NCBI GenBank assembly: GCA_002269645.1 | Contig: NIVC01001400.1 | Span: 1 to 41,419 of the forward strand | Direction of reading: 5' to 3' | Origin: Macrostomum lignano | Lineage: Eukaryota | DNA: 41,419 nt | Shown here: piece after piece, positions 6,067 through 40,944 of the stretch | How the letters are laid out: every line of letters starts with the position of its first letter | Numbering within the stretch: the first letter of the stretch is position 1 | Notes under the pieces: model-generated | Told to the model about the DNA's origin: nothing | The model's database searches: none | The model's input: only the letters and a program-made list of their open reading frames with translations | Position numbers and translations under genes: made by a program

Positions 6067-6773
6067 AGGTAATGTCCAAGGACAAGTTTAAACAATTTCT
6101 AAGCGTTTACAAGCAGAAAGGGCTTCGCGTACACATGCCATCTCATTTCTTTTTATGAGTATCGTTATAGCAAGGTCAATATAAAACTTTTTAGGATGTG
6201 AAAGGCTATTAAATATAACGACGGTTATTTGCAAACTACTCTACTGAAAGCGTGGATTCCAGTAGGCTGTTAAGCGCATATGCATGGAAATTAAGCGTAT
6301 ATTATCGTTTACTTAATTTTAAATAGAAATTCTGACACAATGGAACTGCGGGATGATTTTAAGCTCAAATTCATTATCAATGATCAATGGCTGTGCTGTG
6401 ACTGCAGATTCTCATCTTCTATCATCTTCTTCAGTCTGCAGAGCTCAGCTTTCAATAGCAATAAAGCTGTACGCTTCTCGGCGCTTTTCTATAGAAAATA
6501 TTTCATCCGCTATGCTAGTTACTGTTGTGCTGCCTCGCGGTTTCCATGGTGACAAAGAATCACAATTCAATAGGATGAGCTGCAGTTGCGTTGCGACTTT
6601 AATTCTACCGCTTCTACCGATGCCATTCAATATAAAGAAAATTTTAGATCTTTACAATAGGCAAACTGGTCGAGACGACAGTATTAACTCGGGCAACAAT
6701 TAGAGATTTCTAACAGGGTTTTACCTAATCTAAATGTTAATGTGCTGGTTTTTATACCTAGTTGTAATACAGA

Positions 6774-7150
6774 GGGGGAGGGAGATGGGGACAGAGAGGG
6801 ATAGGGAGGGTGAGAGTGGGAGAAGGAGGAGACTGAGAGGGAGAGGGGGTAGATGGAGAGGGAGAGAGGAAGAGGGAGAGGGAGATGGAGAGGAAGATGA
6901 TGTAAATGGAGAGGGAGAGAGGAAGGGGGAGAGAGGAAGAGGGAGAGGGAGAGAGAGGGGGAGAGGGAGAGGGAGAGGGGGTAGATGGAGAGGGAGAGAG
7001 GAAGAGGGAGAGGGAGGAGAGGAAAAAGGAGAGAGGAGGAGAGGGAGAGAGTGAGAAAGGGAGGGGTAGATGGAGAAGTGGAAAGAGGAGAGGCAGATGG
7101 AGAGGGAGGGGTGAGGGGGAGATGGAGAGGGAGGCAGAGAGAGAGAGAGA
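6774..7150. repeat. Polypurine GA-rich simple repeat
   Basis: GGGAGA-type units. Confidence 0.9.
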
Positions 7151-7841
7151 GGAGGGATATCGACAAGGTGAGAGAGCATCGAATTGGGAAGAACACATGA
7201 GATGGAGACAGCTATAGAAGAAGGCGGAGAGGCACAGATGGTGAGTATAGCAAATCGCAGAATTTGATGAGGCCACGTGAGTAAAAAAAACACAGAGTGG
7301 ATGAAGGCTCTCCCTCAAAGTTGAATCCAAGGATTCTAAAAAAGTTGATCCCGGACAATGCAATCGCATACCTGAGGCTTAGGAAATGCATTAGCTAGGT
7401 GCAACCTGAGAAGAACCCCAATCCAAACCTTCATCATTGTGTCGCACTCCCAGCATCCACCCCATGCTTGAATGCAGAGCACGGCGCAGCCCACCACAAA
7501 CTTCCTTCAAAAGATTGTTCAGGAAGTTTGCCCCCCGGTTCTTCAGTTAAAACCTGCGCTATGCCGTGTGTCCCTGAGCAGCTGGGGCCAGATGAGAATT
7601 TGTGCTCAGAGCACTGAACTTCAAAGGGGAGCTCAGGCTGCTTTTACCCGGAAGAGAGCATTGCATTCATTTTTGCATTTGCGCGTACAGGACTTGTCAG
7701 TTGAAATTTTCCTATTTGATTCTGCACTACCAACAAGGAGAGAGGATACGTCGATAAGCTGATTTCAGCCATTATTAAGAATTCTAACTGAGCTGCGCTG
7801 GGTTAAATGCACTGTGGCGAAATAGTGGATAATGACTCACC

Positions 7842-8680
<839 letters not shown>

Positions 8681-9309: not shown

Positions 9310-10053
9310 TGCAGGGTGAGATGAGAGAAAGTAGATGTAAGAAGAGAAGAGATTTAGGACGAGAGGAGGTGTAGCGATAAAAATGTAGAGAGAGATGTAG
9401 GCATAAATGAGAGTAGGGAGAGGAGATGTAGGAATAGATGAGATTTAGAGAGAAGAGAGGTAAGGAGAAAGGAGATGTAGGCCTAGAGAAGATGTCAGGA
9501 GAGGTGATGTAGGGATAGGGAAAGAGGAAATGTAGGGAGAGAGAGTAAATGTAAGGGGAGAAATTTAGGAAGAGATGTAGAGAAAGTAGATCTAGGAAAA
9601 ATGATGAGGAGATGAGATGAAGGGAGAGAGGAGATGAAGGGAGAGAGGAGATGAAGGGAGAGAGGAGATGATGGGTGAAAGGAGATGTAGGGAGAGGAGA
9701 TGTAGGGAGAGGAGATGTAGGGAGAGGAGATGTAGGGATAGGAAAATAGGAGATATAATGATAGTGAAAGAGGAGATACAGGGATAGGAAAAGAGGAGAT
9801 GTAGGCATATTGAAAGAGGAGATATAGGGATAGGGAAAGAGGAGATGTAGGGATAGTGAAAGAGGAGATGTAGGGATAGGGAAAGAGGAGATGTAGGGAT
9901 AGGGAAGGGAGAGAGGAGAGGAGGGGAGAGAGGAGATGAAGGGAGAGAGGAGAGGAAGGGAGAGAGGAGATGAAGGGAGAGAGGAGAGGAAGGGAGAGAG
10001 GAGATGAAGGGAGAGAGGAGATGAAGGGAGAGAGGAGATGAAGGGAGAGGAGA
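9310..10053. repeat. GA-rich tandem simple repeats (AGAGGAGATGAAGGGAG-like) in FANK1 intron 1
   Basis: Roughly 17-23-nt purine units. Confidence 0.9.
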
Positions 10054-10086: not shown

Positions 10087-10480
10087 GTGCAGGTGCAGCG
10101 CTCCGACCAGGCGCAGCCAGACAGCTGGGACGTGGCCTACAAAGGCTACGACACGAAGTGCACAGTGACTGGCCTGTCAGACAGCCAGTCCTACAGCCTG
10201 CGCTTCCGTTTCGGCGTCGACCCCGGCTGGGGCGAGTTCTCCAACCCGCAGTCGGTCAAAACCGCTCGCAGACTGTACACCGGCGAGGATCTGCATCGTC
10301 TGGTTCGACTGGAGAAACTGCAGGAGCTTCAGCGCGTGTTAGACACAGGCGAGGCCAATCCCAACGCGCCAGATGACAAAGGCTTCAGCCCCCTGATGCA
10401 GGCGGCTCTCGCTGGCAAGGCCGAGTCCTGTGAGATGCTCATCAATAGCGGAGCCCAGGTGGACTGGTGCGGAGAGAACG
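10087..10480 (+). CDS. FANK1: FANK1 exon 2 (FN3 C-terminal half and first ankyrin repeats)
   Basis: CCCAG acceptor. YKGYDTKCTVTGLSDSQSYSLRFR (FN3), GEDLHRLV, GFSPLMQAALAGKAESCEMLINSGAQVD (ankyrin). GTGAGT donor at 10481, phase 1. Confidence 0.92.
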
Positions 10481-10514
10481 GTGAGTCAGGAGATTACCGA
10501 TTTTATTCTGTCAT

Positions 10515-13500
10515 CAGCTGACAGTTGATTCAGCATGACGTTCCCTGACAGTTGATTCAGCATGACGTTCTGTGACACTTGATTCAGCATGACGTTCTCT
10601 GACACTTGATTCAGCATGACGTTCTCTGACACTTGATTCAGCATGACGTTCTGTGACACTTGATTCAGCATGACGCTCTCTGACACTTGATTCAGCATGA
10701 CGCTCTCTGACACTTGATTCAGCATGACGTTCCCTGACACTTGATTCAGCATGACGCTCTCTGACACTTGATTCGGCATGACGTTCCCTGACACTTGATT
10801 CAGCATGACGCTCTCTGACACTTGATTCAGCATGACGCTCTCTGACACTTGATTCAGCATGACGCTCTCTGACACTTGATTCAGCATGACGCTCTCTGAC
10901 ACTTGATTCAGCATGACGCTCTCTGACACTTGATTCAGCATGACGCTCTCTGACACTTGATTCAGCATGACGCTCTCTGACACTTGATTCAGCATGACGT
11001 TCCCTGACAGTTGATTCAGCATGACGTTCCCTGACAGTTGATTCAGCATGACGCTCTCTGACAGTTGATTCAGCATGACGCTCTCTGACAGTTGATTCAG
11101 CATGACGTTCCCTGACACTTGATTCAGCATGACGTTCTGTGACACTTGATTCAGCATGACGCTCTCTGACACTTGATTCAGCATGACGCTCTCTGACACT
11201 TGATTCAGCATGACGTTCTGTGACAGTTGATTCAGCATGACGCTCTGTGACAGTTGATTCAGCATGACGCTCTCTGACACTTGATTCAGCATGACGTTCT
11301 CTGACACTTGATTCAGCATGACGTTCTGTGACACTTGATTCAGCATGACGCTCTCTGACACTTGATTCAGCATGACGTTCCCTGACAGTTGATTCAGCAT
11401 GACGTTCTGTGACACTTGATTCAGCATGACGTTCTCTGACAGTTGATTCAGCATGACGCTCTCTGACACTTGATTCAGCATGACGTTCCCTGACACTTGA
11501 TTCAGCATGACGTTCTCTGACAGTTGATTCAGCATGACGTTCTGTGACAGTTGATTCAGCATGACGTTCTGTGACAGTTGATTCAGCATGACGTTCTGTG
11601 ACACTTGATTCAGCATGACGTTCTCTGACACTTGATTCAGCATGACGTTCTGTGACAGTTGATTCAGCATGACGCTCTCTGACACTTGATTCAGCATGAC
11701 GCTCTCTGACACTTGATTCAGCATGACGCTCTCTGACAGTTGATTCAGCATGACGTTCTCTGACACTTGATTCAGCATGACGCTCCCTGACACTTGATTC
11801 AGCATGACGCTCTCTGACACTTGATTCAGCATGACGTTCTCTGACAGTTGATTCAGCATGACGCTCTCTGACACTTGATTCAGCATGACGTCTCTGACAG
11901 TTGATTCAGCATGACGTCTCTGACACTTGATTCAGCATGACGCTCTCTGACACTTGATTCAGCATGACGTTCTCTGACACTTGATTCAGCATGACGCTCT
12001 CTGACACTTGATTCAGCATGACGTTCTCTGACAGTTGATTCAGCATGACGTTCTGTGACACTTGATTCAGCATGACGTTCTCTGACACTTGATTCAGCAT
12101 GACGTTCCCTGACACTTGATTCAGCATGACGCTCTCTGACACTTGATTCAGCATGACGCTCTCTGACACTTGATTCAGCATGACGCTCTCTGACAGTTGA
12201 TTCAGCATGACGTTCTCTGACACTTGATTCAGCATGACGCTCCCTGACACTTGATTCAGCATGACGCTCTCTGACACTTGATTCAGCATGACGTTCTGTG
12301 ACAGTTGATTCAGCATGACGCTCTCTGACACTTGATTCAGCATGACGCTCCCTGACACTTGATTCAGCATGACGTTCTGTGACAGTTGATTCAGCATGAC
12401 GTTCTCTGACACTTGATTCAGCATGACGCTCCCTGACACTTGATTCAGCATGACGTTCTGTGACACTTGATTCAGCATGACGTTCTCTGACACTTGATTC
12501 AGCATGACGCTCTCTGACACTTGATTCAGCATGACGCTCTCTGACACTTGATTCAGCATGACGCTCTCTGACACTTGATTCAGCATGACGTTCTCTGACA
12601 GTTGATTCAGCATGACGTTCTGTGACAGTTGATTCAGCATGACGCTCTCTGACAGTTGATTCAGCATGACGTTCTCTGACAGTTGATTCAGCATGACGCT
12701 CTCTGACAGTTGATTCAGCATGACGTTCTCTGACAGTTGATTCAGCATGACGCTCTCTGACAGTTGATTCAGCATGACGTTCCCTGACAGTTGATTCAGC
12801 ATGACGTTCTGTGACAGTTGATTCAGCATGACGTTCTCTGACACTTGATTCAGCATGACGTTCCCTGACAGTTGATTCAGCATGACGTTCTCTGACACTT
12901 GATTCAGCATGACGTTCTCTGACAGTTGATTCAGCATGACGTTCTGTGACAGTTGATTCAGCATGACGTTCCCTGACAGTTGATTCAGCATGACGCTCTC
13001 TGACACTTGATTCAGCATGACGCTCTCTGACAGTTGATTCAGCATGACGTTCTGTGACAGTTGATTCAGCATGACGTTCTGTGACACTTGATTCAGCATG
13101 ACGTTCTCTGACACTTGATTCAGCATGACGTTCCCTGACAGTTGATTCAGCATGACGTTCTCTGACACTTGATTCAGCATGACGTTCTCTGACAGTTGAT
13201 TCAGCATGACGTTCTGTGACAGTTGATTCAGCATGACGTTCTCTGACACTTGATTCAGCATGACGTTCTCTGACACTTGATTCAGCATGACGTTCCCTGA
13301 CAGTTGATTCAGCATGACGTTCTCTGACACTTGATTCAGCATGACGTTCTGTGACAGTTGATTCAGCATGACGCTCTCTGACACTTGATTCAGCATGACG
13401 CTCCCTGACACTTGATTCAGCATGACGTTCTGTGACAGTTGATTCAGCATGACGTTCTCTGACACTTGATTCAGCATGACGCTCCTGACACTTGATTCAG

Positions 13501-16500
13501 CATGACGTTCTGTGACAGTTGATTCAGCATGACGTTCTCTGACACTTGATTCAGCATGACGCTCTCTGACACTTGATTCAGCATGACGCTCTCTGACACT
13601 TGATTCAGCATGACGCTCTCTGACACTTGATTCAGCATGACGTTCTCTGACAGTTGATTCAGCATGACGTTCTGTGACAGTTGATTCAGCATGACGCTCT
13701 CTGACACTTGATTCAGCATGACGTTCTCTGACAGTTGATTCAGCATGACGCTCTCTGACAGTTGATTCAGCATGACGTTCTCTGACAGTTGATTCAGCAT
13801 GACGCTCTCTGACAGTTGATTCAGCATGACGTTCCCTGACAGTTGATTCAGCATGACGTTCTGTGACACTTGATTCAGCATGACGTTCTCTGACACTTGA
13901 TTCAGCATGACGTTCCCTGACAGTTGATTCAGCATGACGTTCTGTGACACTTGATTCAGCATGACGTTCTCTGACACTTGATTCAGCATGACGTTCTGTG
14001 ACAGTTGATTCAGCATGACGTTCCCTGACAGTTGATTCAGCATGACGCTCTCTGACACTTGATTCAGCATGACGCTCTCTGACAGTTGATTCAGCATGAC
14101 GTTCTGTGACAGTTGATTCAGCATGACGTTCTGTGACACTTGATTCAGCATGACGTTCTCTGACACTTGATTCAGCATGACGTTCCCTGACAGTTGATTC
14201 AGCATGACGTTCTCTGACACTTAATTCAGCATGACGTTCTCTGACAGTTGATTCAGCATGACGTTCTGTGACAGTTGATTCAGCATGACGTTCTCTGACA
14301 CTTGATTCAGCATGACGTTCTCTGACACTTGATTCAGCATGACGTTCCCTGACAGTTGATTCAGCATGACGTTCTCTGACACTTGATTCAGCATGACGTT
14401 CTGTGACAGTTGATTCAGCATGACGTTCTCTGACAGTTGATTCAGCATGACGCTCTCTGACACTTGATTCAGCATGACGTTCCCTGACACTTGATTCAGC
14501 ATGACGCTCTCTGACACTTGATTCAGCATGACGTTCCCTGACACTTGATTCAGCATGACGTTCTGTGACACTTGATTCAGCATGACGCTCTCTGACACTT
14601 GATTCAGCATGACGCTCTCTGACACTTGATTCAGCATGACGTTCCCTGACACTTGATTCAGCATGACGCTCTCTGACACTTGATTCAGCATGACGTTCCC
14701 TGACACTTGATTCAGCATGACGTTCTGTGACACTTGATTCAGCATGACGCTCTCTGACACTTGATTCAGCATGACGCTCTCTGACACTTGATTCAGCATG
14801 ACGCTCTCTGACACTTGATTCAGCATGACGCTCTCTGACACTTGATTCAGCATGACGCTCTCTGACACTTGATTCAGCATGACGCTCTCTGACACTTGAT
14901 TCAGCATGACGTTCCCTGACAGTTGATTCAGCATGACGTTCCCTGACAGTTGATTCAGCATGACGCTCTCTGACAGTTGATTCAGCATGACGCTCTCTGA
15001 CAGTTGATTCAGCATGACGTTCCCTGACACTTGATTCAGCATGACGTTCTGTGACACTTGATTCAGCATGACGCTCTCTGACACTTGATTCAGCATGACG
15101 CTCTCTGACAGTTGATTCAGCATGACGTTCTGTGACAGTTGATTCAGCATGACGCTCTGTGACAGTTGATTCAGCATGACGCTCTCTGACACTTGATTCA
15201 GCATGAAGTTCTCTGACACTTGATTCAGCATGACGTTCTGTGACACTTGATTCAGCATGACGTTCTCTGACACTTGATTCAGCATGACGTTCCCTGACAG
15301 TTGATTCAGCATGACGCTCTCTGACAGTTGATTCAGCATGACGTTCTCTGACAGTTGATTCAGCATGACGCTCTCTGACACTTGATTCAGCATGACGTTC
15401 CCTGACACTTGATTCAGCATGACGTTCTCTGACAGTTGATTCAGCATGACGTTCTGTGACAGTTGATTCAGCATGACGTTCTGTGACAGTTGATTCAGCA
15501 TGACGTTCTCTGACACTTGATTCAGCATGACGCTCTCTGACACTTGATTCAGCATGACGTTCTGTGACAGTTGATTCAGCATGACGTTCTGTGACAGTTG
15601 ATTCAGCATGACGTTCTCTGACACTTGATTCAGCATGACGTTCTCTGACACTTGATTCAGCATGACGTTCTGTGACACTTGATTCAGCATGACGCTCTCT
15701 GACACTTGATTCAGCATGACGTTCCCTGACACTTGATTCAGCATGACGCTCTCTGACACTTGATTCAGCATGACGCTCTCTGACACTTGATTCAGCATGA
15801 CGCTCTCTGACAGTTGATTCAGCATGACGCTCTCTGACACTTGATTCAGCATGACGCTCCCTGACACTTGATTCAGCATGACGCTCTCTGACACTTGATT
15901 CAGCATGACGTTCTGTGACAGTTGATTCAGCATGACGTTCTGTGACACTTGATTCAGCATGACGCTCCCTGACACTTGATTCAGCATGACGTTCTGTGAC
16001 AGTTGATTCAGCATGACGTTCTCTGACACTTGATTCAGCATGACGCTCTCTTACACTTGATTCAGCATGACGCTCTCTGACACTTGATTCAGCATGACGC
16101 TCTCTGACACTTGATTCAGCATGACGTTCTCTGACACTTGATTCAGCATGACGTTCTCTGACAGTTGATTCAGCATGACGTTCCCTGACACTTGATTCAG
16201 CATGACGTTCTCTGACAGTTGATTCAGCATGACGTTCTGTGACACTTGATTCAGCATGACGTTCTGTGACACTTGATTCAGCATGACGCTCTCTGACAGT
16301 TGATTCAGCATGACGCTCTCTGACAGTTGATTCAGCATGACGCTCTCTGACACTTGATTCAGCATGACGTTCTGTGACACTTGATTCAGCATGACGCTCT
16401 CTGACACTTGATTCAGCATGACGTTCTCTGACACTTGATTCAGCATGACGTTCTCTGACAGTTGATTCAGCATGACGTTCTGTGACACTTGATTCAGCAT

Positions 16501-18816
16501 GACGCTCTCTGACACTTGATTCAGCATGACGTTCCCTGACACTTGATTCAGCATGACGTTCTCTGACACTTGATTCAGCATGACGTTCCCTGACAGTTGA
16601 TTCAGCATGACGTTCTCTGACACTTGATTCAGCATGACGTTCTCTGACAGTTGATTCAGCATGACGCTCTCTGACACTTGATTCAGCATGACGTTCTCTG
16701 ACACTTGATTCAGCATGACGTTCTCTGACAGTTGATTCAGCATGACGTTCTCTGACAGTTGATTCAGCATGACGTTCTGTGACAGTTGATTCAGCATGAC
16801 GTTCTCTGACACTTGATTCAGCATGACGCTCTCTGACACTTGATTCAGCATGACGTTCTGTGACAGTTGATTCAGCATGACGTTCTGTGACAGTTGATTC
16901 AGCATGACGTTCTCTGACACTTGATTCAGCATGACGCTCCCTGACACTTGATTCAGCATGACGTTCTGTGACAGTTGATTCAGCATGACGTTCTCTGACA
17001 CTTGATTCAGCATGACGCTCTCTGACACTTGATTCAGCATGACGCTCTCTGACACTTGATTCAGCATGACGCTCTCTGACACTTGATTCAGCATGACGTT
17101 CTCTGACAGTTGATTCAGCATGACGTTCTGTGACAGTTGATTCAGCATGACGCTCTCTGACACTTGATTCAGCATGACGTTCTCTGACAGTTGATTCAGC
17201 ATGACGCTCTCTGACAGTTGATTCAGCATGACGTTCTCTGACAGTTGATTCAGCATGACGCTCTCTGACAGTTGATTCAGCATGACGTTCCCTGACAGTT
17301 GATTCAGCATGACGTTCTGTGACACTTGATTCAGCATGACGTTCTCTGACACTTGATTCAGCATGACGTTCCCTGACAGTTGATTCAGCATGACGTTCTC
17401 TGACACTTGATTCAGCATGACGTTCTCTGACAGTTGATTCAGCATGACGTTCTGTGACAGTTGATTCAGCATGACGTTCCCTGACAGTTGATTCAGCATG
17501 ACGCTCTCTGACACTTGATTCAGCATGACGCTCTCTGACAGTTGATTCAGCATGACGTTCTGTGACAGTTGATTCAGCATGACGTTCTGTGACACTTGAT
17601 TCAGCATGACGTTCTCTGACACTTGATTCAGCATGACGTTCCCTGACAGTTGATTCAGCATGACGTTCTCTGACACTTAATTCAGCATGACGTTCTCTGA
17701 CAGTTGATTCAGCATGACGTTCTGTGACAGTTGATTCAGCATGACGTTCTCTGACACTTGATTCAGCATGACGTTCTCTGACACTTGATTCAGCATGACG
17801 TTCCCTGACAGTTGATTCAGCATGACGTTCTCTGACACTTGATTCAGCATGACGTTCTGTGACAGTTGATTCAGCATGACGTTCTCTGACAGTTGATTCA
17901 GCATGACGCTCTCTGACACTTGATTCAGCATGACGTTCCCTGACACTTGATTCAGCATGACGCTCTCTGACACTTGATTCAGCATGACGTTCCCTGACAC
18001 TTGATTCAGCATGACGTTCTGTGACACTTGATTCAGCATGACGCTCTCTGACACTTGATTCAGCATGACGCTCTCTGACACTTGATTCAGCATGACGTTC
18101 CCTGACACTTGATTCAGCATGACGCTCTCTGACACTTGATTCAGCATGACGTTCCCTGACACTTGATTCAGCATGACGTTCTGTGACACTTGATTCAGCA
18201 TGACGCTCTCTGACACTTGATTCAGCATGACGCTCTCTGACACTTGATTCAGCATGACGCTCTCTGACACTTGATTCAGCATGACGCTCTCTGACACTTG
18301 ATTCAGCATGACGCTCTCTGACACTTGATTCAGCATGACGCTCTCTGACTCTTGATTCAGCATGACGTTCCCTGACAGTTGATTCAGCATGACGTTCCCT
18401 GACAGTTGATTCAGCATGACGCTCTCTGACAGTTGATTCAGCATGACGCTCTCTGACAGTTGATTCAGCATGACGTTCCCTGACACTTGATTCAGCATGA
18501 CGTTCTGTGACAGTTGATTCAGCATGACGCTCTGTGACAGTTGATTCAGCATGACGCTCTCTGACACTTGATTCAGCATGACGTTCTCTGACACTTGATT
18601 CAGCATGACGTTCTGTGACACTTGATTCAGCATGACGTTCTCTGACACTTGATTCAGCATGACGTTCCCTGACAGTTGATTCAGCATGACGCTCTCTGAC
18701 AGTTGATTCAGCATGACGTTCTCTGACAGTTGATTCAGCATGACGCTCTCTGACACTTGATTCAGCATGACGTTCTCTGACACTTGATTCAGCATGACGT
18801 TCTCTGACAGTTGATT
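10515..18816. repeat. 27-bp minisatellite array, left arm (about 307 units; CTGACA[C/G]TTGATTCAGCATGACG[C/T]TC[T/C][C/G/T])
   Basis: Continuous tandem units; the minus strand reads as a 9-aa repeat MLNQ(V/L)S(E/Q/G)(N/S)V. Confidence 0.98.
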
Positions 18817-19045
18817 ACGTCAGTTTGAGGCAGGTATCTGACTCTAACTGGTTTTAAACCCCCCCCCGCGCCGGCCCGGCCTCGCTTTGGTGGGTTGGTG
18901 GGGTGCTGGTGCTCTGCGTGCGTGCAGGGCTTAGGGCAGCCTCCCCCCGCTCTGTGTTATTTAGTCACGCGTCGCGGCCGCTGAGTCGGCGTAATTTTGG
19001 CAAAATATTTTTAGCCTGCCTGATTTGCCAAGCACTGCACTCACA

Positions 19046-20071
19046 ATGGACTCTACGTTGGGCAGCATGACCGTGCAGGCCCTCAAAGATGTCTTACGCG
19101 AGAAGGCCTTACCTACAAGTGGCAATAAAGAAGAGCTGATAGGCCGCCTGCTCGCTGCAAGCCAGGCCGAACGAGCTCCCAGCGATGACGACGGTGACGA
19201 CGACCAGGACGAGGATGACGTGCGCCGGGCTGCGCCAGCGGAGGAGGCCACAGAAGCGCAGATTCGGCAGACTCAGAAGAGGATCGAGCTGCTTAAACTG
19301 CAGAAGGCTGAGGCCCAGTTGCGGGATGAAGTGCAGTCGATCCGCAGTGGCGCCGCATCGCCCCCGCTGGCCAGAGGAGGGCCGGACATCTACGCCAGCC
19401 TGTTCGGGGACCAGAGCCGACAACCGAGGTTTGATTCGGCCGGAGCCCAGCGGCCCCCATCAGCGCTGCTCATCCCGGAATTTCTGGACGAGAGGCAGCA
19501 GTCGGGAGGATGGCTGACACAGGAACGTGGTCGCCTGACTCTGAAAGGCGCAACGCCGAGCCTGTCCGGAGTCAACTTCGGCCAGTGGGTGGCTGCCAAC
19601 GCGCGGATCATGCAGCGACTGCTGGAGACCGGCCAGCTGGTGGCGCCCGGTACGGATGGACAGCCCGACTGCAAGAGTCTGAACGCCTACCTCAACTTTA
19701 ACATCCACATCGGCGAGCTGCTCGACGCTGGCTACGACTGGAAGGTGGTGCTCCAGTACGACCAGGACATGAGGCTGCAGCAGCACTCGCGACAGCGCGA
19801 CTGGGACAGCCCCGATCTGAACCTCATCATCAAGCATATGACGGCGCCCAAAAACCTGCGAGCTGCTGGCCCAGTCGCGGTCGGTCAAGGAGTCCAGGGT
19901 CACCGTAGCAGGGGCCAGCTGTCATCCGCTGGACAGGTCATCTGCGGCTTGTTCAATAGCAACAAAGGCTGTCACAGACACACCTGCAATTTCGCCCACA
20001 TCTGCCGCATCTGCGAAGGGAGCCACTCAAAGCTGCAACACAGCTCGGTGGCTGCCGAATCAAAAAACTGA
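19046..20071 (+). CDS. Gag-like ORF1 (341 aa): N-terminal SAP domain, C-terminal CCCH/CCHH zinc fingers
   Basis: SMTVQALKDVLREKALPTSGNKEELIGRLL fits the SAP consensus. W..YDQDMR...W motif. C-x8-C-x4-C-x3-H-x-C-x2-C-x3-H-x4-H, similar to Ngaro ORF1 fingers. Confidence 0.85.
   Translation: MDSTLGSMTVQALKDVLREKALPTSGNKEELIGRLLAASQAERAPSDDDGDDDQDEDDVRRAAPAEEATEAQIRQTQKRIELLKLQKAEAQLRDEVQSIRSGAASPPLARGGPDIYASLFGDQSRQPRFDSAGAQRPPSALLIPEFLDERQQSGGWLTQERGRLTLKGATPSLSGVNFGQWVAANARIMQRLLETGQLVAPGTDGQPDCKSLNAYLNFNIHIGELLDAGYDWKVVLQYDQDMRLQQHSRQRDWDSPDLNLIIKHMTAPKNLRAAGPVAVGQGVQGHRSRGQLSSAGQVICGLFNSNKGCHRHTCNFAHICRICEGSHSKLQHSSVAAESKN
20062..20068 (+). promoter_or_regulatory. Candidate -1 programmed ribosomal frameshift heptamer A_AAA_AAC
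   Basis: Gag ends TCA AAA AAC TGA. The heptamer is correctly phased (X XXY YYZ), lies immediately before the stop, and leads into the open pol frame. Confidence 0.75.
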
Positions 20072-22587
20072 GCAAAGAGGCGGGTCGCGGCGGCACCAGT
20101 TTTAGCCCTAAGCGGACGGCGTCTGATAGACAGTCCAAAATTTTAATTCCATGCGAGACAGCTGCTCGCACTGCCACTGGCCCTGCCGCTCGCCCTGCCA
20201 CTCGCCTTGCCGCTCGACCTGCCACTCGCCCTGCCGCTCGCCCTGCCGCTCGCCCTGCCGCTCGCCATGCCACTCGCCCTGCCACTCGCCCTGCCGCCGG
20301 CCCTGCCGCCGGCCCTGCTGCCGGCCCTACTGCCGGCCCTGCTGCCGTTCCTGCTGCCGGCCCTGCTGCCGGCCCTGCTGCCGTTCCTGCTGCCGGTCCT
20401 GCTGCCGGCCCTGCTGCCGGCCCTGCCGCCGGTCCTGCTGCCGGCCCTGCTGCCGGTCCTGCTGCCGGCCCTGCCGCCTGTCCTGCTGCCGTTCCTGCTG
20501 CCGGTCCTGCTGCCGGCCCTGCTGCCGGCCCTGCCGCCGGTCCTGCTGCCGGCCCTGCTGCCGGTCCTGCTGCCGGCCCTGCTGCCGGCCCTGCTGCCGG
20601 CCCTGCTGCCGGCCCTGCTGCCGGTCCTGCTGCCGGCCCTGCTGCCGGTCCTGCTGCCGGCCCTGCTGCCGGCCCAGCCGCCGGCCCTGCCGCCGGTCCT
20701 GCTGCCGGCCCAGCCGCCGGCCCTGCCGCCGGTCCTGCTGCCGGCCCAGCCGCTGGCCCTGCCGCCGGCCCTGCCGCCGGCCCCGCTGCCGGCCCTGCTG
20801 CCGGTCCTGCTGCCGGCGCTGCTGCCGGCCCTGTTGCCGGCCCGGTGGCTGCACTCCGAAAACGTTGGCCGCTGTTAACTGCTGCTTGGACACCAGTCCT
20901 GCTCGGAGACTCGGACGCGGAGTTTCTGATCGCGGGAATTCGCGATGGCTTTCGCATCACCGACGCGGCTCCGACCAGCGAATCCCAGCTCGAAAATCAT
21001 GCATCCGCCCGCTGCGAGGCAAATCGGAATGCCGTTGAGCTGCAGATCAGAGAGGAGGTCGTGGCTGGCCGGTACATCAGCGCAACTGACTTGGGCATCG
21101 CCAGGCCGACCATCATCAGCCCACTGGGCGCCGTCCCGAAGGCAGACGGCGCCATCCGCCTGATTCACGACGCGTCCGCGCCACAGGGCAACAGCCTCAA
21201 CGATCTGTACAAGCCCCGCCAGAAGATGAAGTTTGCCAATGTCGAGGATCTCACCAGGCAGCTGGCACCAAGCTGGTTCATCAGCAAGGTCGACCTACGC
21301 CACGCCTACCGAAGTGTTCAGGTGCACCCAGACTGCTATAAGGCGACGGGGCTCCGGTGGACGTTCGAGCTGGACGGTCAGCCCACTTATCTGGTTGACA
21401 CGCGACTCCCATTCGGTGCGGCGGCATCAGTCAACATTTTCCACCGCCTAACGCAAGCTGTCAAGCGCTTTATGTACAGGCAATTCTCGCATCTGTCCAA
21501 ATTCGTCGTCATCGCATACCTCGACGATTTCTGCATAGCTGCCCGGGACTACGAGGTCTGCCTGCAGCTGCACAATTTTCTGCTGGTCACCCTGCAGCGC
21601 CTCGGCTTTGAGATCAACTGGGCCAAGACGCAGAGCCCAGCCACTTCGGTCACTTTCCTGGGTGTGCAGATCGACACATTGACTGGCCTGCTGTCACTGC
21701 CCGCCAAGAAGATGGACGGCCTTCGAGAACTTCTCCAGGACTGCGCCAACTCGAAGAGCCTGCAAAAACGTCGCCTTCAGCACCTAGTCGGCAAACTGAA
21801 CTGGTTCTGCAAAGTGGCCAAACCTGCAAAGGCCCTGCTTCGCGCGCTCCTGGAGATAACCATCGCTATTCCTGAGCAGCATCATCGAGTACCGGTGCGC
21901 GGCGAGCTACTGGCCCAGTTGCAGTTCTGGCAGCATGCAATCCCAGTGTTCCCGACCGACAAGCTGTGGCGGCGTGCACGAGTGCTGGCAGCGGTCGAGA
22001 CGGACGCCTGCGTCAGTGCCGGTGGCATGATCCTGAGCACCTCTGATGGCCAGCGCGAGTTCCGCCTCGTCGACTTCTGCAGTGACGCCGGTGGCATCTT
22101 CCTGAGCGAGCACATCAACGCCAAGGAGACGGTACTGCCGCTGCTCGCCATCATTCTGTTCCAGGAGCAGCTGGCCGGCGGCAAGGTGGCCTGCTACGTC
22201 GACAGCAGCGCGGCGGTCGGCACCATCAACCGCGGTGCCTCCAGCAACCCGATCGTCATGACCCTGCTCAAAACGGCCACTCTGGCAGCGCTGAGGCACG
22301 ACTTTCAGTTTCGAGCTCACCATATGCCGGGGTCCTGGCAGCTGCTGAGCGACCCGCTGTCGCGCTGCCTGACGCATCCCCGCCACATGCTGCTGTTTCT
22401 GCTGCGCTACTTCGGCCGGGCCAAGGCGCAGCCGGAAGATCTGCGCAGGGCCTGCCTCAATGAGTCAACGGCGGCCCGGTTGCTTGAGCAGGCGTCGCTC
22501 GCGCTGAGCCCCGGTCTCTGGCGCAGTTCTCGAGCGGAGCGAGTTGCGACGGCTGAAGCAGATCCCGAGCTCAGGTACGAGTCTTAG
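20068..22587 (+). CDS. Pol (reverse transcriptase + RNase H) in the -1 frame relative to gag, including a PAAG-repeat linker
   Basis: Frame is open from 19960 to TAG at 22585-22587. RT motifs: [58 protein letters not shown]. RNase H motifs: TDAC, HINAKE, YVDS, SDPLSR. The RT domain begins at about 20900. Confidence 0.9.
20165..20845 (+). repeat. GC-rich 12-bp minisatellite (CCTGCTGCCGGC)n inside the element, encoding (PAAG)n in the pol frame
   Basis: Tandem 12-nt units with no stop codon in the pol frame. Confidence 0.93.
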
Positions 22588-22776
22588 AGCTATTGCTTGG
22601 ACCTGGCTTTTTTGGCTTGGTTTAATTTTTTCTGCGGCTCGTTGATTTGATTTTACACGCTTGTCTCCTTCTCCCTCTTTCTGTTGGTGTTCGGGTTCGT
22701 TTTCCCTTTCTGGGCCGCGTCTGCCGGTCTTTTGTGCCACTTGCTTTTACTCTGCGTTAGTCTTTTGGGGTTTAAT

Positions 22777-25700
22777 CAGCATGACGTTCTCTGACACTTG
22801 ATTCAGCATGACGTTCCCTGACAGTTGATTCAGCATGACGTTCTCTGACACTTGATTCAGCATGACGCTCTCTGACACTTGATTCAGCATGACGCTCTCT
22901 GACACTTGATTCAGCATGACGTTCTCTGACACTTGATTCAGCATGACGTTCCCTGACAGTTGATTCAGCATGACGTTCTCTGACACTTGATTCAGCATGA
23001 CGTTCTCTGACACTTGATTCAGCATGACGCTCTCTGACACTTGATTCAGCATGACGTTCTCTGACAGTTGATTCAGCATGACGTTCTCTGACAGTTGATT
23101 CAGCATGACGTTCTCTGACAGTTGATTCAGCATGACGCTCTCTGACAGTTGATTCAGCATGACGTTCTGTGACAGTTGATTCAGCATGACGTTCTCTGAC
23201 AGTTGATTCAGCATGACGTTCTCTGACACTTGATTCAGCATGACGTTCTCTGACACTTGATTCAGCATGACGTTCTGTGACAGTTGATTCAGCATGACGT
23301 TCTCTGACACTTGATTCAGCATGACGTTCTCTGACACTTGATTCAGCATGACGCTCTCTGACACTTGATTCAGCATGACGTTCTCTGACACTTGATTCAG
23401 CATGACGTTCTCTGACACTTGATTCAGCATGACGTTCTCTGACACTTGATTCAGCATGACGTTCTGTGACACTTGATTCAGCATGACGTTCTGTGACACT
23501 TGATTCAGCATGACGTTCTGTGACAGTTGATTCAGCATGACGTTCTGTGACACTTGATTCAGCATGACGCTCTCTGACACTTGATTCAGCATGACGTTCT
23601 CTGACACTTGATTCAGCATGACGTTCTGACACTTGATTCAGCATGACGCTCTCTGACACTTGATTCAGCATGACGCTCTCTGACACTTGATTCAGCATGA
23701 CGCTCTCTGACACTTGATTCAGCATGACGCTCTCTGACACTTGATTCAGCATGACGCTCTCTGACACTTGATTCAGCATGACGTTCTCTGACACTTGATT
23801 CAGCATGACGTTCTCTGACACTTGATTCAGCATGACGTTCTCTGACACTTGATTCAGCATGACGTTCTGACACTTGATTCAGCATGACGCTCTCTGACAC
23901 TTGATTCAGCATGACGTTCTCTGACACTTGATTCAGCATGACGCTCTCTGACACTTGATTCAGCATGACGCTCTCTGACACTTGATTCAGCATGACGCTC
24001 TCTGACACTTGATTCAGCATGACGTTCTCTGACACTTGATTCAGCATGACGCTCTCTGACACTTGATTCAGCATGACGCTCTCTGACACTTGATTCAGCA
24101 TGACGTTCTCTGACACTTGATTCAGCATGACGTTCTCTGACACTTGATTCAGCATGACGCTCTCTGACACTTGATTCAGCATGACGTTCTCTGACACTTG
24201 ATTCAGCATGACGTTCTCTGACACTTGATTCAGCATGACGTTCTCTGACACTTGATTCAGCATGACGTTCTGTGACACTTGATTCAGCATGACGCTCTCT
24301 GACACTTGATTCAGCATGACGCTCTCTGACACTTGATTCAGCATGACGCTCTCTGACACTTGATTCAGCATGACGCTCTCTGACACTTGATTCAGCATGA
24401 CGCTCTCTGACACTTGATTCAGCATGACGCTCTCTGACACTTGATTCAGCATGACGCTCTCTGACACTTGATTCAGCATGACGTTCCCTGACAGTTGATT
24501 CAGCATGACGTTCCCTGACAGTTGATTCAGCATGACGCTCTCTGACAGTTGATTCAGCATGACGCTCTCTGACACTTGATTCAGCATGACGTTCCCTGAC
24601 ACTTGATTCAGCATGACGTTCTGTGACACTTGATTCAGCATGACGCTCTCTGACACTTGATTCAGCATGACGCTCTCTGACAGTTGATTCAGCATGACGT
24701 TCTGTGACAGTTGATTCAGCATGACGCTCTGTGACACTTGATTCAGCATGACGCTCTCTGACACTTGATTCAGCATGACGTTCTCTGACACTTGATTCAG
24801 CATGACGTTCTCTGACACTTGATTCAGCATGACGCTCTCTGACACTTGATTCAGCATGACGTTCCCTGACAGTTGATTCAGCATGACGTTCCCTGACAGT
24901 TGATTCAGCATGACGTTCTCTGACAGTTGATTCAGCATGACGCTCTCTGACACTTGATTCAGCATGACGTTCCCTGACACTTGATTCAGCATGACGTTCT
25001 GACACTTGATTCAGCATGACGTTCTGTGACAGTTGATTCAGCATGACGTTCTCTGACACTTGATTCAGCATGACGTTCTCTGACACTTGATTCAGCATGA
25101 CGTTCTCTGACACTTGATTCAGCATGACGTTCTCTGACACTTGATTCAGCATGACGCTCTCTGACACTTGATTCAGCATGACGCTCTCTGACACTTGATT
25201 CAGCATGACGCTCTCTGACACTTGATTCAGCATGACGCTCTCTGACACTTGATTCAGCATGACGCTCTCTGACAGTTGATTCAGCATGACGTTCTGACAG
25301 TTGATTCAGCATGACGTTCTCTGACAGTTGATTCAGCATGACGCTCTCTGACACTTGATTCAGCATGACGCTCTCTGACAGTTGATTCAGCATGACGTTC
25401 TGTGACAGTTGATTCAGCATGACGTTCTGTGACAGTTGATTCAGCATGACGCTCTCTGACACTTGATTCAGCATGACGTTCTCTGACACTTGATTCAGCA
25501 TGACGTTCCCTGACAGTTGATTCAGCATGACGTTCTCTGACACTTGATTCAGCATGACGCTCTCTGACACTTGATTCAGCATGACGCTCTCTGACACTTG
25601 ATTCAGCATGACGCTCTCTGACACTTGATTCAGCATGACGTTCTCTGACAGTTGATTCAGCATGACGTTCTCTGACACTTGATTCAGCATGACGCTCTCT

Positions 25701-27217
25701 GACACTTGATTCAGCATGACGTTCTCTGACAGTTGATTCAGCATGACGCTCTCTGACAGTTGATTCAGCATGACGCTCTCTGACAGTTGATTCAGCATGA
25801 CGTTCTCTGACAGTTGATTCAGCATGACGTTCTCTGACAGTTGATTCAGCATGACGTTCTCTGACACTTGATTCAGCATGACGTTCTCTGACACTTGATT
25901 CAGCATGACGTTCCTGACAGTTGATTCAGCATGACGTTCTCTGACACTTGATTCAGCATGACGTTCTCTGACAGTTGATTCAGCATGACGTTCTGTGACA
26001 GTTGATTCAGCATGACGTTCTCTGACAGTTGATTCAGCATGACGCTCTCTGACACTTGATTCAGCATGACGTTCTCTGACAGTTGATTCAGCATGACGTT
26101 CTCTGACACTTGATTCAGCATGACGTTCTCTGACACTTGATTCAGCATGACGTTCTCTGACACTTGATTCAGCATGACGTTCCCTGACAGTTGATTCAGC
26201 ATGACGTTCTCTGACACTTGATTCAGCATGACGTTCTCTGACAGTTGATTCAGCATGACGTTCTCTGACAGTTGATTCAGCATGACGTTCCCTGACACTT
26301 GATTCAGCATGACGTTCTCTGACAGTTGATTCAGCATGACGTTCTGTGACACTTGATTCAGCATGACGTTCTGTGACACTTGATTCAGCATGACGCTCTC
26401 TGACACTTGATTCAGCATGACGCTCTCTGACAGTTGATTCAGCATGACGCTCTCTGACACTTGATTCAGCATGACGTTCTGTGACACTTGATTCAGCATG
26501 ACGCTCTCTGACACTTGATTCAGCATGACGTTCTCTGACACTTGATTCAGCATGACGTTCTCTGACAGTTGATTCAGCATGACGTTCTGTGACACTTGAT
26601 TCAGCATGACGCTCTCTGACACTTGATTCAGCATGACGCTCTCTGACAGTTGATTCAGCATGACGTTCCCTGACAGTTGATTCAGCATGACGTTCTGTGA
26701 CACTTGATTCAGCATGACGTTCTCTGACACTTGATTCAGCATGACGTTCCCTGACAGTTGATTCAGCATGACGTTCTCTGACAGTTGATTCAGCATGACG
26801 TTCTGTGACACTTGATTCAGCATGACGCTCTCTGACACTTGATTCAGCATGACGTTCTCTGACACTTGATTCAGCATGACGTTCTCTGACACTTGATTCA
26901 GCATGACGTTCTCTGACAGTTGATTCAGCATGACGTTCTCTGACAGTTGATTCAGCATGACGCTCTCTGACAGTTGATTCAGCATGACGTTCCCTGACAC
27001 TTGATTCAGCATGACGTTCTGTGACAGTTGATTCTGCATGACGTTCTGTGACAGTTGATTCAGCATGACGTTCTGTGACACTTGATTCAGCATGACGTTC
27101 TCTGACACTTGATTCAGCATGACGTTCTCTGACACTTGATTCAGCATGACGTTCTCTGACACTTGATTCAGCATGACGTTCTGTGACACTTGATTCAGCA
27201 TGACGTTCTCTGACCCT
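22777..27217. repeat. 27-bp minisatellite array, right arm (about 164 units)
   Basis: Same unit as the left arm; resumes mid-unit directly after the element; occasional 25-bp deletion units. Confidence 0.98.
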
Positions 27218-27307
27218 TGATCGTAATTACCGCTGAGCTGCTCTGAGCTCCTTTAACTGACCTTGGTTAGCAGTCCTTGGATCCTAAAATTTCGCAACCC
27301 CCCGCAG

Positions 27308-27693
27308 GCAAGACGGCCCTCATGCTAGTGTGCTACAGAGGCATACTGCCGAGCATCAGGCAGCTGCTGGACCGCGGTGCCAGCAGACTCAAACGGGATC
27401 GCAAAGGCTCCACAGCACTGCACTACGCTGTTGACGGCGAGAAGCTCGAAGCCATCAGCCTGCTGTTGAACTTCTGTCCGGAGAGCGATGCAGTGGACAG
27501 GGAGTCAAAGTCAGACAAGGCTCTTGTCGATGAGCAGGGTGAAGAACCTATGAGAAGCGAGTTGCTCTCGGCCAGAGACGCAAGCGGATGCTGCGCCATC
27601 GTGCGCTGCGCCATGCTGAAGAACAATGGCAACCCGGATGTGACGAAGGCACTACTCGATGCTGGAGCCAGCGCTGACGCGGTTGATGATCAG
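27308..27693 (+). CDS. FANK1: FANK1 exon 3 (ankyrin repeats)
   Basis: CCGCAG acceptor. (G)KTALMLVCYRG...GSTALHYAVDG...VTKALLDAGASADAVDDQ. GTGAGT donor at 27694. Phases 1 and 0 are consistent with the flanking exons. Confidence 0.92.
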
Positions 27694-27899
27694 GTGAGTG
27701 CGTGGGGCTGCAGGTCCGCCACGACGTTGACATTCCACATTCGCCAAGCCATTAAACAGCCGACAAATTGCAAAACCTACCCTAACCTAACAACCCTAAG
27801 CCTCTGAAGTTTTGCCAAATTTCAAAATTCGTTGAACCACTCGATTGCGAAAGATTTCGAAGTATTTTTGGTTTGTCGCCAACGCCCGTCAAAAAGCCT

Positions 27900-28083
27900 C
27901 CTATCTCTTGGTGGACCCTTAATTCTGTCTCTTGGTGGGCGCTCCTGTCTCTTGGTGGGCGCTCCTGTCTCTTGGTGGGCGCTCCTGTCTTTTGGTGGGA
28001 GCCCTGTCTCTTGGTGGGCGCTCCTGTCTTTTGGTGGGCGCTCCTGTCTTTTGGTGGGAGCCCTGTCTCTTGGTGGGAGCCCC
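27900..28083. repeat. 20-bp minisatellite (CTCCTGTCTCTTGGTGGGCG)n in FANK1 intron 3
   Basis: About 9 tandem units. Confidence 0.92.
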
Positions 28084-28305
28084 TAGCTGTCTCATACCTA
28101 TGCAATACCTGCCAAAGAGGTGCCAAAAGTATACAGTTCCTCTTATTCGTCGAGCCTCGATGGTTACCTCTTTCATTTACTTACTGGGAGAGTGCAATTT
28201 TTCTGGGGCCATTGTGCGGTTGTCGGATACGGCCCCTTTCATGGCTCCCCTTTGTGCATACATATGTCACTAGACCCAAACCTTTGCACACGCAAACACC
28301 CGCAG

Positions 28306-28500
28306 GGCCAGACGGCACTGTTCTATTGCGCAATGCACCGCCACTTGCGCATGGCGGAGCTGCTTCTCAGCGCCGGTGCCGACCCGACGAGGCCCAACAT
28401 CAAAGGCGTCACGCCGACGGCCGTGGCCGACGCGCAGGAGAGCGCCGCGATGCGATCTCTGCTGGCAAAAACGGCCGCTGCTGCCGCTGCTTCCAGCTGA
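28306..28500 (+). CDS. FANK1: FANK1 exon 4 (terminal ankyrin repeats)
   Basis: CCGCAG acceptor. GQTALFYCAMHRHLRMAELLLSAGADP...KTAAAAAASS*. Spliced CDS is 135+394+386+195 = 1110 nt = 369 aa, with FN3-then-ankyrin architecture. Confidence 0.92.
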   Translation, partial: GQTALFYCAMHRHLRMAELLLSAGADPTRPNIKGVTPTAVADAQESAAMRSLLAKTAAAAAASS

Positions 28501-28576
28501 TGTCAAGCACTTCTGACGGTGAGATGTTTTTGTACTCATCTATACGTATCACTGCGTGCACATGTACGTGTACTGA

Positions 28577-28905
28577 GATTCCCTGTTAGAGGAGATTCCT
28601 GTTAGATATGAGATTCCCCTGTGAGAAGAATCCTGTTAGATATGAGATTCCTCTGTTAGAGGAGATCCCTGTTAGATATGATATTCCCCTGTGAGAAGAA
28701 TCCTGTTAGATATGAGATTCCTCTGTTAGAGGAGATTCCTGTTAGATATTAGATTCCCCTGTTAGATGAGATCCCTGTTAGATATGAGATTCCTGTTGGA
28801 TATGAGTTTCCCCTGTTAGATGAGGTCTCTGTTAGAGATGAGATTCACCTGCTAGATGAGATACCCCTGTTAGATATGAGACTCCTGTAAGGCATGAGAT
28901 TCCCT
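28577..28905. repeat. About 18-20-bp minisatellite (GAGATTCCTGTTAGATAT-like)
   Basis: Degenerate tandem units. Confidence 0.85.
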
Positions 28906-29162
28906 TACTGGACATGCACTATATCATGTTATTCAATATCAACCACTTTCTACATCTAACAACATTCTTCTAAATTTCAGAATTCGAAAAAGTTTAAAAC
29001 CGTTGGAATAAACAAAAGCTGATCTTGTCGGAACCATCAAAATGCAATGCACTGCGACTAAGTCTAGCAAATGTACACGCATAACTTATGAAGACAGACC
29101 TCAGAAAACTTTTCCAATCCCATAATAACATAAAATTTTTATAACAAAGCCAAGGAAATATA

Positions 29163-29470
29163 ACTGTTGCTAGGGAAGCCAGAACGGGACAGATATCTGT
29201 TGCTAGGGAAGCTAAAAGGGGACAGATATTTGTTGCTAGGGAAGCCAGAAGGACACAGATATCTGTTGCTAGGGAAGCCAGAAGTGGACAGATATCTGTT
29301 GCTAGGGAAGCCAGAAGGACACAGATATCTGTTGCTAGGGAAGCCAGAAGGACACAGATATCTGTTGCTAGGGAAGCCAGAAGGACACAGATATCTGTTT
29401 CTAGGGAAGCCAGAAGGACACAGATATCTGTTGCTAGGGAAGCCAGAAAAGGACATATCTGTTGCTAGGA
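29163..29470. repeat. 33-bp minisatellite (CTGTTGCTAGGGAAGCCAGAAGGACACAGATAT)n
   Basis: About 9 units. Confidence 0.93.
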
Positions 29471-38278: not shown

Positions 38279-38552
38279 TGATACCATCAAAGGCCATGAT
38301 ACCATCGTTTAATGTAGCTCTCTGACATACCATCGAAGGCCATGATACCATCGTTTATGTAGCTCTCTGCCATACCATCGAAGGCAATGACACCATAGTT
38401 TAATGTAGCTCTCTGCCATACCATCGAAGGCAATGACACCATAGTTTAATGTAGCTCTCTGCCAACCATCGAAGGCAATGACACCATAGTTTAATGTAGC
38501 TCTCTGCCATACCATCGAAGGCAATGACACCATAGTTTAATGTAGCTCTCTG
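38279..38552. repeat. 46-bp minisatellite (ATACCATCGAAGGCAATGACACCATAGTTTAATGTAGCTCTCTGCC)n
   Basis: About 6 units. Confidence 0.9.
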
Positions 38553-39425: not shown

Positions 39426-39859
39426 CCTTTCTTCCATTTTAAAGTTATCTTTTAACTTTCTTCTAATTAACAAATTTTTAAGCTAACTTGCCCTAACTAT
39501 AGTATATTTTTTCTAATTTAAGCATAATGTACATATCTTTAATGGTCCACAAGTCAAGCAAACTATTTAGTATTTTTATTCTTTTTTTAAGTAGCCCTTC
39601 ATAAAAAAGCCGCTAGAAAAGTATTCAACCTTGATATTAAAAGTAGCGCAGCATGCGACTGCACGAAGCAAAAAATGAACTATGTTTCAAGATACATGTA
39701 TATTTGATGCCGAATAAATCAAAAGTTACTTTTAAGACACTTTTCTGCCACAACTTATTTTCTTTCTTTCTCCTTTTATAAACGTAACTTTTTCACAGTT
39801 TTTTTGTTTAAATGAAACCAAAAAAACCAACGCGCGCACAGACTCAGCCAGATACGTGT

Positions 39860-40822: not shown

Positions 40823-40944
40823 ACCTCGTGTTAGTAGTCAATGTCGCAATCAAATTTACTGTCTAAAAAAGACAATCTATATACATGTACGTATACTGAG
40901 ATAAATGAAACTCTCTAAAAATAAAACATAGGCTGATGACTTAC

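Follow-up and report, generated by a model that had tools for sequence, protein, structure and literature searches.

Ngaro-like elements, which are tyrosine recombinase (YR) retroelements of the order DIRS, are defined by split direct repeats, of which A1 lies at the 5′ end and B1, A2, and B2 lie at the 3′ end, and by the lack of a methyltransferase domain (PMC9210276, PMC4157794). In Xenopus, Ngaro copies are often without some or all of their split direct repeats, SGNH hydrolase open reading frames (ORFs) were reported in amphibian Ngaro elements (PMC9210276), and truncated YR elements are found in nematodes (PMC4157794). In DIRS-1 of Dictyostelium, the internal complementary region (ICR) is essential, the ends are rebuilt from the internal junction copy, and the proteins can act in trans. 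Furthermore, a circle-junction trinucleotide was proposed to define the crossover during DIRS-1 integration (PMC7192593). In this work, a retroelement inserted into a satellite array was analyzed in contig NIVC01001400.1, the whole of which (41,419 nucleotides) is referred to as the window. The insert is very probably a defective Ngaro-like copy that resides in the genome of Macrostomum lignano or a very close relative and was produced by internal deletion.

Insertion into the satellite array

The element lies in a 27-bp satellite array at 10518–27221 (period 27, 616 copies, consensus CTGACACTTGATTCAGCATGACGTTCT; Tandem Repeats Finder, TRF), which extends for 8.3 kb to the left and 4.4 kb to the right of the insert. 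The left junction reads ...CTGACAGTTGATT/ACGTCAGTTTGAGG... and the right junction ...TTTTGGGGTTTAAT/CAGCATGACGTTCT. The in-register satellite copies on either side are 3987 nt apart from start to start, which equals 27 + 3960 nt. Because the satellite register is kept exactly across the insert, the element occupies 18817–22776 (3,960 bp). The original prediction of a complete-looking insert with both ends visible was thereby confirmed by the satellite phase, with the true end one base beyond the 22775 given there. No target bases were lost at the insertion site, and the target-site duplication (TSD) is 0 nt, with a single ambiguous T. The satellite fixes both ends, so the locus is a rare natural read-out of the recombination point of a YR retroelement in its target. 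The GC (guanine plus cytosine) content also separates the insert (63.7%) from the satellite (46.3%) and reaches 61–73% per kb in the GC-rich block. The features of the locus were as follows.

10518–18816, no strand: left part of the 27-bp satellite, the insertion host (TRF and junction sequence)
18817–22776, + strand: whole retroelement copy, 3,960 bp, 63.7% GC (junction sequences and satellite phase)
18817–19045, + strand: 5′ untranslated region (UTR), presumed "A" terminal region, 229 nt, starting ACGTCAGT (motif and spacing only)
19046–20071, + strand: ORF1, Gag, 341 amino acids (aa), from ATG 19046 to TGA 20071 (Pfam and Gag homology)
19702–22587, + strand: Pol reading frame, −1 relative to gag (ORF list and translation)
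20062–20068, + strand: putative −1 frameshift heptamer A AAA AAC in the ORF1 frame, directly before TGA 20069–20071
20171–20843, + strand: 12-bp tandem repeat, 56 copies, 673 bp, 88% matches, (PAAG)n in the Pol frame (TRF)
21238–21672, + strand: reverse transcriptase (RT) domain with YLDD at 21517–21528 (Pfam RVT_1, E 8.6e-18)
21997–22365, + strand: RNase H (RH) domain with D387, E428, D453, and D503 present (21-sequence alignment)
22387–22536, + strand: RH C-terminal tail continuing in frame into the first ~27 YR residues (tblastn of P0089)
22588–22776, + strand: 3′ UTR, 189 nt, 47% T (composition and comparison with B regions)
22777–27221, no strand: right part of the 27-bp satellite (TRF and junction sequence)

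No poly(A) was found at the 3′ end of the insert, which reads ...GGGGTTTAAT, and no long terminal repeats (LTRs), inverted terminal repeats (ITRs), or other direct or inverted terminal repeats of at least 14 nt were found in the insert, the satellite itself excepted. No repeat is shared by the 5′ and 3′ parts of the insert, which means that this copy has no split direct repeats. The only terminal inverted match is 9 nt long and pairs TTAAACCCC (18854–18862, ~38 nt in from the 5′ end) with its complement GGGGTTTAA (22767–22775, 3′ terminus), and 16 of 300 shuffles score as high. A second copy or fragment of the element was not found elsewhere in the 41-kb window. Over 17 positions at 22729–22745, the 3′ UTR stretch TTTTGTGCCACTTGCTT has 14 in common with the satellite unit (2 of 300 shuffles attain its score of 19); this likeness could be chance, or a similarity between element and target that bears on site choice.

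Remnant of the tyrosine recombinase

The Pfam search of the element recognized the SAP and RVT_1 domains only, and DDE integrase and endonuclease domains were not found. The RT matched the retroviral RTs of the PDB at the sequence level (E ~5e-6), and the acidic residues D387, E428, D453, and D503 of RNase H fall into nearly invariant columns of the 21-sequence alignment. No YR was found in the six frames of the whole window with a hidden Markov model (HMM) made from ~70 YR ORFs of the element's relatives, and this family HMM gave noise only over the 3′ UTR (2.0 and −3.0 bits). On the other hand, residues 1–63 of P0089, the protein of the related locus L086 that comprises the RH tail and the YR N-terminus, align with 22387–22536 in the frame of ORF2 (tblastn E 3e-8). 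The RH-tail part of the alignment pairs MLLFILRFFG with 10 residues of the window, and the YR N-terminal part, LAFAPATWRASRA, is paired with a segment of 13 residues at 22498–22536. The same segment is the counterpart of the YR N-terminal motif LAFAPATW[KR]ASR, which is common to the related loci L084, L085, and L086. In a six-frame motif scan of the window, the segment scored 45 and the next best 29, and a score of 45 was reached by only one of 300 composition-matched shuffles of the element. It follows from the alignment and the scan that the element formerly had a YR, of which ~300 codons are gone. The likeness to the relatives ends at ~22536, which marks the left deletion breakpoint. The YR C-terminal tail (NERTAARLANSVSAHLA) also matched a window segment of 17 residues (10/20 identical), but this match was set aside, being out of colinear order and overlapping with the better alignment of the RH tail.

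The original prediction was thus correct in that no YR ORF exists in any frame, and its list of further absences from the copy (DDE integrase, LTRs, ITRs, split direct repeats, poly(A), and TSD) agrees with the family HMM, Pfam, and repeat scans. It would be wrong, though, to say that no trace of a YR is left, given the N-terminal remnant.

Related loci and their recombinases

In total, 87 related loci were compared, and all 87 non-self matches of ORF2 are RT/RH proteins. Apart from one M. lignano protein described below, these homologues are 32–54% identical to ORF2 and ~500–550 aa long. Of the 66 loci that extend to the end of RNase H and for 700 nt or more beyond it, 63 have a YR ORF directly after RNase H. 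The downstream ORFs of the relatives give Pfam Phage_int_SAM_4 and Phage_integrase signals. The median distance between RH and YR in the relatives is 150 nt, which is too short to hold the methyltransferase-like domain found in DIRS1 and PAT elements. The three loci without a YR (L016, L047, and L070) carry RT/RH and then more than 1 kb of unrelated, AT-richer host DNA without a YR signal, and they look like truncated copies.

The closest lineage consists of four GC-rich contigs from one Joint Genome Institute (JGI) metagenome, 3300040801 (L084–L087), which are 39–56% identical to the window element in Gag and RT/RH; the GC content is 63.4% for L084 and 64.5% for L085. The RT/RH of L084 is 53–56% identical to that of the window and is followed by a YR of 325 aa (family HMM E 3e-63). 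L085 also carries RT/RH and YR, and L086 encodes the RH tail and YR in the single ORF of P0089. In these three loci RNase H runs straight into a YR of ~325 aa, after which a B/A repeat junction is located. Likewise, in both the window and P0089 the RH tail leads directly into the YR N-terminus with no methyltransferase-sized segment between them.

A YR is also present in the more distant loci L001–L003. The complete architecture can be read in L002, which comes from the genome of the coral Oculina patagonica. Its A1 (7591–7922) and A2 (12167–12498) are identical over 332 nt, its B1 (12035–12166) equals its B2 (12624–12755), and there is no TSD. The order A1-ORF1-ORF2-ORF3-B1-A2-B2 represents full split direct repeats without a methyltransferase, and the family is Ngaro-like for these two reasons. 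The prediction of a DIRS-order, Ngaro-type retroelement with intact gag and RT/RH was therefore borne out by the ORFs, the domains, and the YR-bearing relatives.

Two other candidates were rejected. The RT matches on contigs of 3–4.7 kb prompted the idea of a small reverse-transcribing virus similar to hepadna- or nackednaviruses; these contigs carry gag, RT/RH, and YR. An SGNH-hydrolase ORF as an Ngaro hallmark was seen only beside L003, and the extra ORFs in other long loci were uninformative. In L003, NADAR and GDSL/SGNH-lipase ORFs are located just upstream of gag (1374–2390).

Terminal regions of the element

The B region of L085 and L086 comprises the ~130 nt that follow the YR stop; it ends with TTTAAT or TATAAT and continues into GTAAGTG.... 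The sequence 3′ of B in these loci is homologous to the 5′ UTR ahead of the L087 gag (score 57, z 9.9, 0/500 shuffles); it is therefore the A2 repeat, and the join is the B1/A2 junction. The last ~120 nt of the window element (22657–22776) resemble this post-YR B region, with a score of 31 against the B of L086 (z 3.1, 3/500 shuffles), and the similarity is made of two colinear blocks with matching spacing. Moreover, the window element ends with ...TTTAAT at the position where the relatives carry the B/A junction TTTAAT/GTAAGTG. With regard to the 5′ end, A2 of L085 and L086 starts with GTAAGT, compared with ACGTCAGT in the window, and a TTAAAC motif followed by a C-rich tract occurs ~36 nt into the window 5′ UTR, with similar spacing in the relatives. 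From these comparisons, the window copy would have one A and one B and no internal B1/A2 junction. The predicted length of the 5′ UTR (229 nt) was correct, and that of the 3′ UTR (188 nt) was one nucleotide too short. As for the repeats near these regions, the 5′ end of L087 adjoins a (GAGT)n microsatellite, and A2 of L086 contains a 15-nt tandem repeat.

Gag, putative frameshift site, and Gag-Pol linker

Both the Gag and Pol ORFs are free of stops. Gag contains an N-terminal SAP domain at 19058–19153 (Pfam E 3.7e-9) and a C-terminal zinc knuckle, CGLFNSNKGCHRHTCNFAHICRICEGSH, at 19943–20026. It is 39% identical to its closest homologue, the Gag of L087 (P0100), which also bears a SAP domain, and its homology to ORF1 of L001, a relative with a YR, extends to the zinc knuckle (E 5e-9). 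The ORF2 frame has an upstream stop at 19701, is open from 19702, where it overlaps ORF1, and closes with a stop ending at 22587. No ATG, GTG, or TTG start was found in this frame between 19701 and 20845. The heptamer A AAA AAC, a canonical slippery sequence, followed by TGA ends not only the window gag but likewise that of L087 (L087 1213–1222), despite the low Gag identity between the two. A downstream stimulatory RNA structure was unsupported, since the folding was no better than that of shuffles (z 0.93). Gag-Pol is probably made by −1 frameshifting at this site and read through the repeat linker.

The tandem repeat forms a low-complexity linker between gag and RT. Linkers in the −1/Pol frame are also present in L084 (1–~170, repeat AHLNPPA) and L087 (~1230–1323, repeat AHHHSSA), and the units are unrelated among the members of the lineage, the window unit PAAG being encoded by 12 nt. 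The N-terminal linker of Pol thus has the look of a spacer that evolves fast and separates Gag from RT.

Comparison with described retroelements

Like the described Ngaro-like elements, zebrafish Ngaro1 and Xenopus DIRS-53_XT among them (PMC9210276, PMC4157794), the window copy has an ORF1 with a zinc knuckle, i.e. a zinc-finger Gag-like protein, an RT/RNase H ORF akin to those of YR elements, no methyltransferase, and an insertion without TSD. The YR placed right after RNase H without a methyltransferase is found in the relatives and as a remnant here, and the A1...B1-A2-B2 arrangement is found in the relatives. Unlike the Ngaro-like elements, the window copy has ~27 YR codons in place of a downstream YR ORF, a single A and a single B in place of the split direct repeats, and no internal B1/A2 junction. 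Its Gag also differs by the SAP domain, its Gag-Pol by the −1 frameshift site and the long repeat linker, and it has no SGNH-hydrolase ORF. As two of the defining Ngaro properties, the YR and the split direct repeats, are absent, the copy is filed as a defective derivative, neither as an autonomous member nor as a new class. The loss of repeats and coding capacity is shared with the degenerate Ngaro and DIRS copies (PMC9210276, PMC4157794), but in the window copy gag and pol are fully open and both true ends are kept, which is a clean internal deletion and not general erosion.

The differences from other retroelements are larger. The ITRs, the ICR, and the methyltransferase-like domain of DIRS-1 are absent from both the window copy and the relatives; in comparison with DIRS1-like elements in general, the window copy has no ITRs, and the relatives combine direct split repeats with a spacing too small for a methyltransferase. 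PAT-like elements combine split direct repeats with a methyltransferase-like domain, whereas no segment of methyltransferase size separates RH and YR in the window or the relatives. The window copy also differs from LTR retrotransposons and retroviruses by the absence of LTRs, DDE integrase, and a TSD of 4–6 bp, and from non-LTR (LINE-like) elements by the absence of a poly(A) or other simple 3′ tail, an endonuclease domain, and a TSD. Large retrotransposon derivatives (LARDs) and terminal-repeat retrotransposons in miniature (TRIMs) arise from LTR retrotransposons by deletion, are non-autonomous, and require a partner in trans. The window copy resembles them in being internally deleted with its ends kept, and it may likewise need a partner in trans; however, it belongs to another order with another integration chemistry, and it has retained Gag and RT/RH and lacks the integration enzyme only.

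A probable second locus and the putative host gene

ORF2 is 99.8% identical to the M. lignano protein A0A1I8JA32 (UniProt), which shares the deletion junction and the post-junction sequence with the window copy. The protein leaves the window sequence at GT 22578, where it splices to 78 residues for which no coding sequence was found in the window, including the 18.6 kb downstream of the element. Exons with ankyrin repeats flank the satellite on the same strand (10087–10521, 27277–27807, and 28120–28500, all +), and the 16.7-kb array with the element would appear to be intronic to an ankyrin-repeat gene, to which the element is in sense orientation. Because the downstream exons differ and ankyrin exons lie here instead, A0A1I8JA32 most likely belongs to another locus, probably a second one with the same deletion. 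Exact-protein look-ups with P0001 and with ORF1 and ORF2 of the window returned no match.

Origin of the recombinase-less copy

We hypothesize that the copy descends from a full-length ancestor of ~5.2–5.4 kb with the order A1, gag, −1 frameshift, repeat linker, RT/RNase H, YR, B1, A2, and B2. The window copy would have kept A, gag, the linker, RT/RH, the first ~27 YR codons, and B, and would have lost ~300 YR codons together with the internal B1/A2 junction. A single deletion that starts near YR codon 27 and reaches into the second B would take out YR, B1, and A2 at once. The same product would also arise from a YR deletion plus recombination between B1 and B2, or resolution of the two junction sites. 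Entry into the satellite would have proceeded by conservative YR recombination of a circular cDNA at the B/A junction, and such recombination accounts for the lack of a TSD, the absence of lost target bases, and the end at the B/A position of the relatives. The window copy is flanked by a target ATT and an element-terminal AAT, which is compatible with the circle-junction trinucleotide proposal (PMC7192593), although it is not proof of it. The copy should be unable to transpose by itself, as it has no integrase and no internal junction to rebuild its ends; the latter point is drawn by analogy with the essential DIRS-1 ICR (PMC7192593), whose counterpart is missing. The loss of the YR before integration, with the YR supplied in trans by a full-length partner, and its loss after integration are about equally probable.

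Several points weigh against the reading of the insert as an internally deleted Ngaro-like copy. The nucleotide homology of the window 5′ UTR to the A of the relatives is not significant (z 1.1–1.4), and the homology of the 3′ UTR to B appears moderate, as 3 of 500 shuffles reach its score. On the side of the right deletion breakpoint, the MAFFT placements past column ~130 disagree between runs, the B-region block is the only one supported by shuffles, and no convincing homologue was found for the segment 22537–22656. The Ngaro-like assignment is a structural one, made from the architecture of the relatives. Furthermore, the loss of the YR is deduced from relatives of other organisms and not from a full-length M. 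lignano copy of the same genome, and no M. lignano protein was found in the protein databases with the closest YR or Gag as the query. Finally, a YR-less lineage that propagates would likewise account for intact gag and pol without YR and for the probable second locus that shares the junction.

This last scenario, in which the YR deletion is older than the insertion and a YR-less gag-pol lineage spreads by borrowing the recombinase from full-length Ngaro-like partners, is one of the two options of the original prediction and a serious possibility, albeit held with less than even confidence. It is in line with the stop-free Gag and Pol with intact catalytic residues, the conserved frameshift site, and the clean insertion without TSD, which is a signature of YR recombination; moreover, A0A1I8JA32, with the same post-junction sequence and other exons, suggests a second locus, and the proteins of DIRS-1 do work in trans (PMC7192593). 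On the other hand, neither a YR-bearing partner nor a second Gag was found among the M. lignano proteins, just one other protein model is known, and the window copy has no B1/A2 junction, whose DIRS-1 counterpart, the ICR, is essential (PMC7192593). In addition, duplications could have copied a dead element without transposition, and M. lignano has undergone recent large-scale duplications. It is accordingly rather doubtful that M. lignano harbors a propagating semi-autonomous Ngaro derivative with its own capsid and RT, the recombinase in trans, and at least two loci with the same junction. Such a YR-less form may integrate as single-junction A...B circles. To our knowledge, no propagating YR-less lineage has been described among the YR retroelements, with no dedicated literature search having been made.

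The remaining explanations are much weaker. A simple 3′ truncation just after RNase H, by a break or by satellite recombination, and not an internal deletion keeping the true 3′ end, would resemble the 3 of 66 relatives in which RT/RH is followed by unrelated sequence (L016, L047, and L070), and the last ~50 nt of the insert are weakly similar to the satellite, as given above. This explanation is nevertheless improbable, since the satellite register is exact across the insert, which a random truncation would give in 1 of 27 cases, and the 3′ UTR resembles B and ends at the B/A junction position of the relatives. The distinct class that was the other option of the original prediction, without a tyrosine recombinase and integrating with the help of a host enzyme or an HUH nuclease or through an RT-mediated route, is based on negative evidence only, i.e. 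no integrase, endonuclease, YR, LTR, poly(A), or TSD. It can hardly be maintained in view of the YR remnant at the expected place, the 3′ UTR matching the post-YR B region of the relatives, and the YR elements that make up the close and distant relatives, including L084–L086, 63 of 66 loci, and L002 with its split repeats; the base-conserving insertion without TSD is itself what YR recombination predicts. An assembly artefact in which a chimeric join put the element into the array is just as implausible, for even though such arrays are difficult to assemble, the two junctions are exact to the base and share one satellite phase, and the array runs on for 8.3 kb and 4.4 kb. The preferred explanation thus remains the internal deletion of a Ngaro-like element. 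This is essentially the deleted Ngaro copy that the original prediction had named as the outcome contrary to its new class, although it was demonstrated with relatives from other organisms and not with copies of the same genome.

Other sequences in the window

Simple repeats form a patchwork over the left third of the window (620–765, 4617–6063, 6771–7157, 7841–8678, and 9609–10049); they include interstitial telomere-like (TTAGGG/TAGGGT)n, 1.4 kb of (AGAGGG)n, 0.8 kb of (CTAT)n, and purine-rich minisatellites. Downstream of the array, minisatellites with periods of 20, 36, 33, 46, and 30 bp occur at 27925–28084, 28574–28903, 29160–29469, 38281–38552, and 40578–40823. An ORF of 239 aa at 38736–39455 (+), located in a GC-rich patch and without a Pfam match, may be a fragment of another mobile element.

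Implications

Degenerate Ngaro copies without split direct repeats are already known (PMC9210276). What appears new from the sequence analysis is a first look at the family in Macrostomum, the Gag with a SAP domain, the conserved frameshift site, and the repeat linker; no literature on DIRS or Ngaro elements of Macrostomum was found. The candidate for a new retroelement class resolves to a deletion derivative of a known kind, which is mostly a matter of clean-up, and a Ngaro-like family is documented in Macrostomum lignano. If it is true that copies with the same junction sit at unrelated sites, they would offer a convenient natural test of trans-mobilization in YR retroelements.

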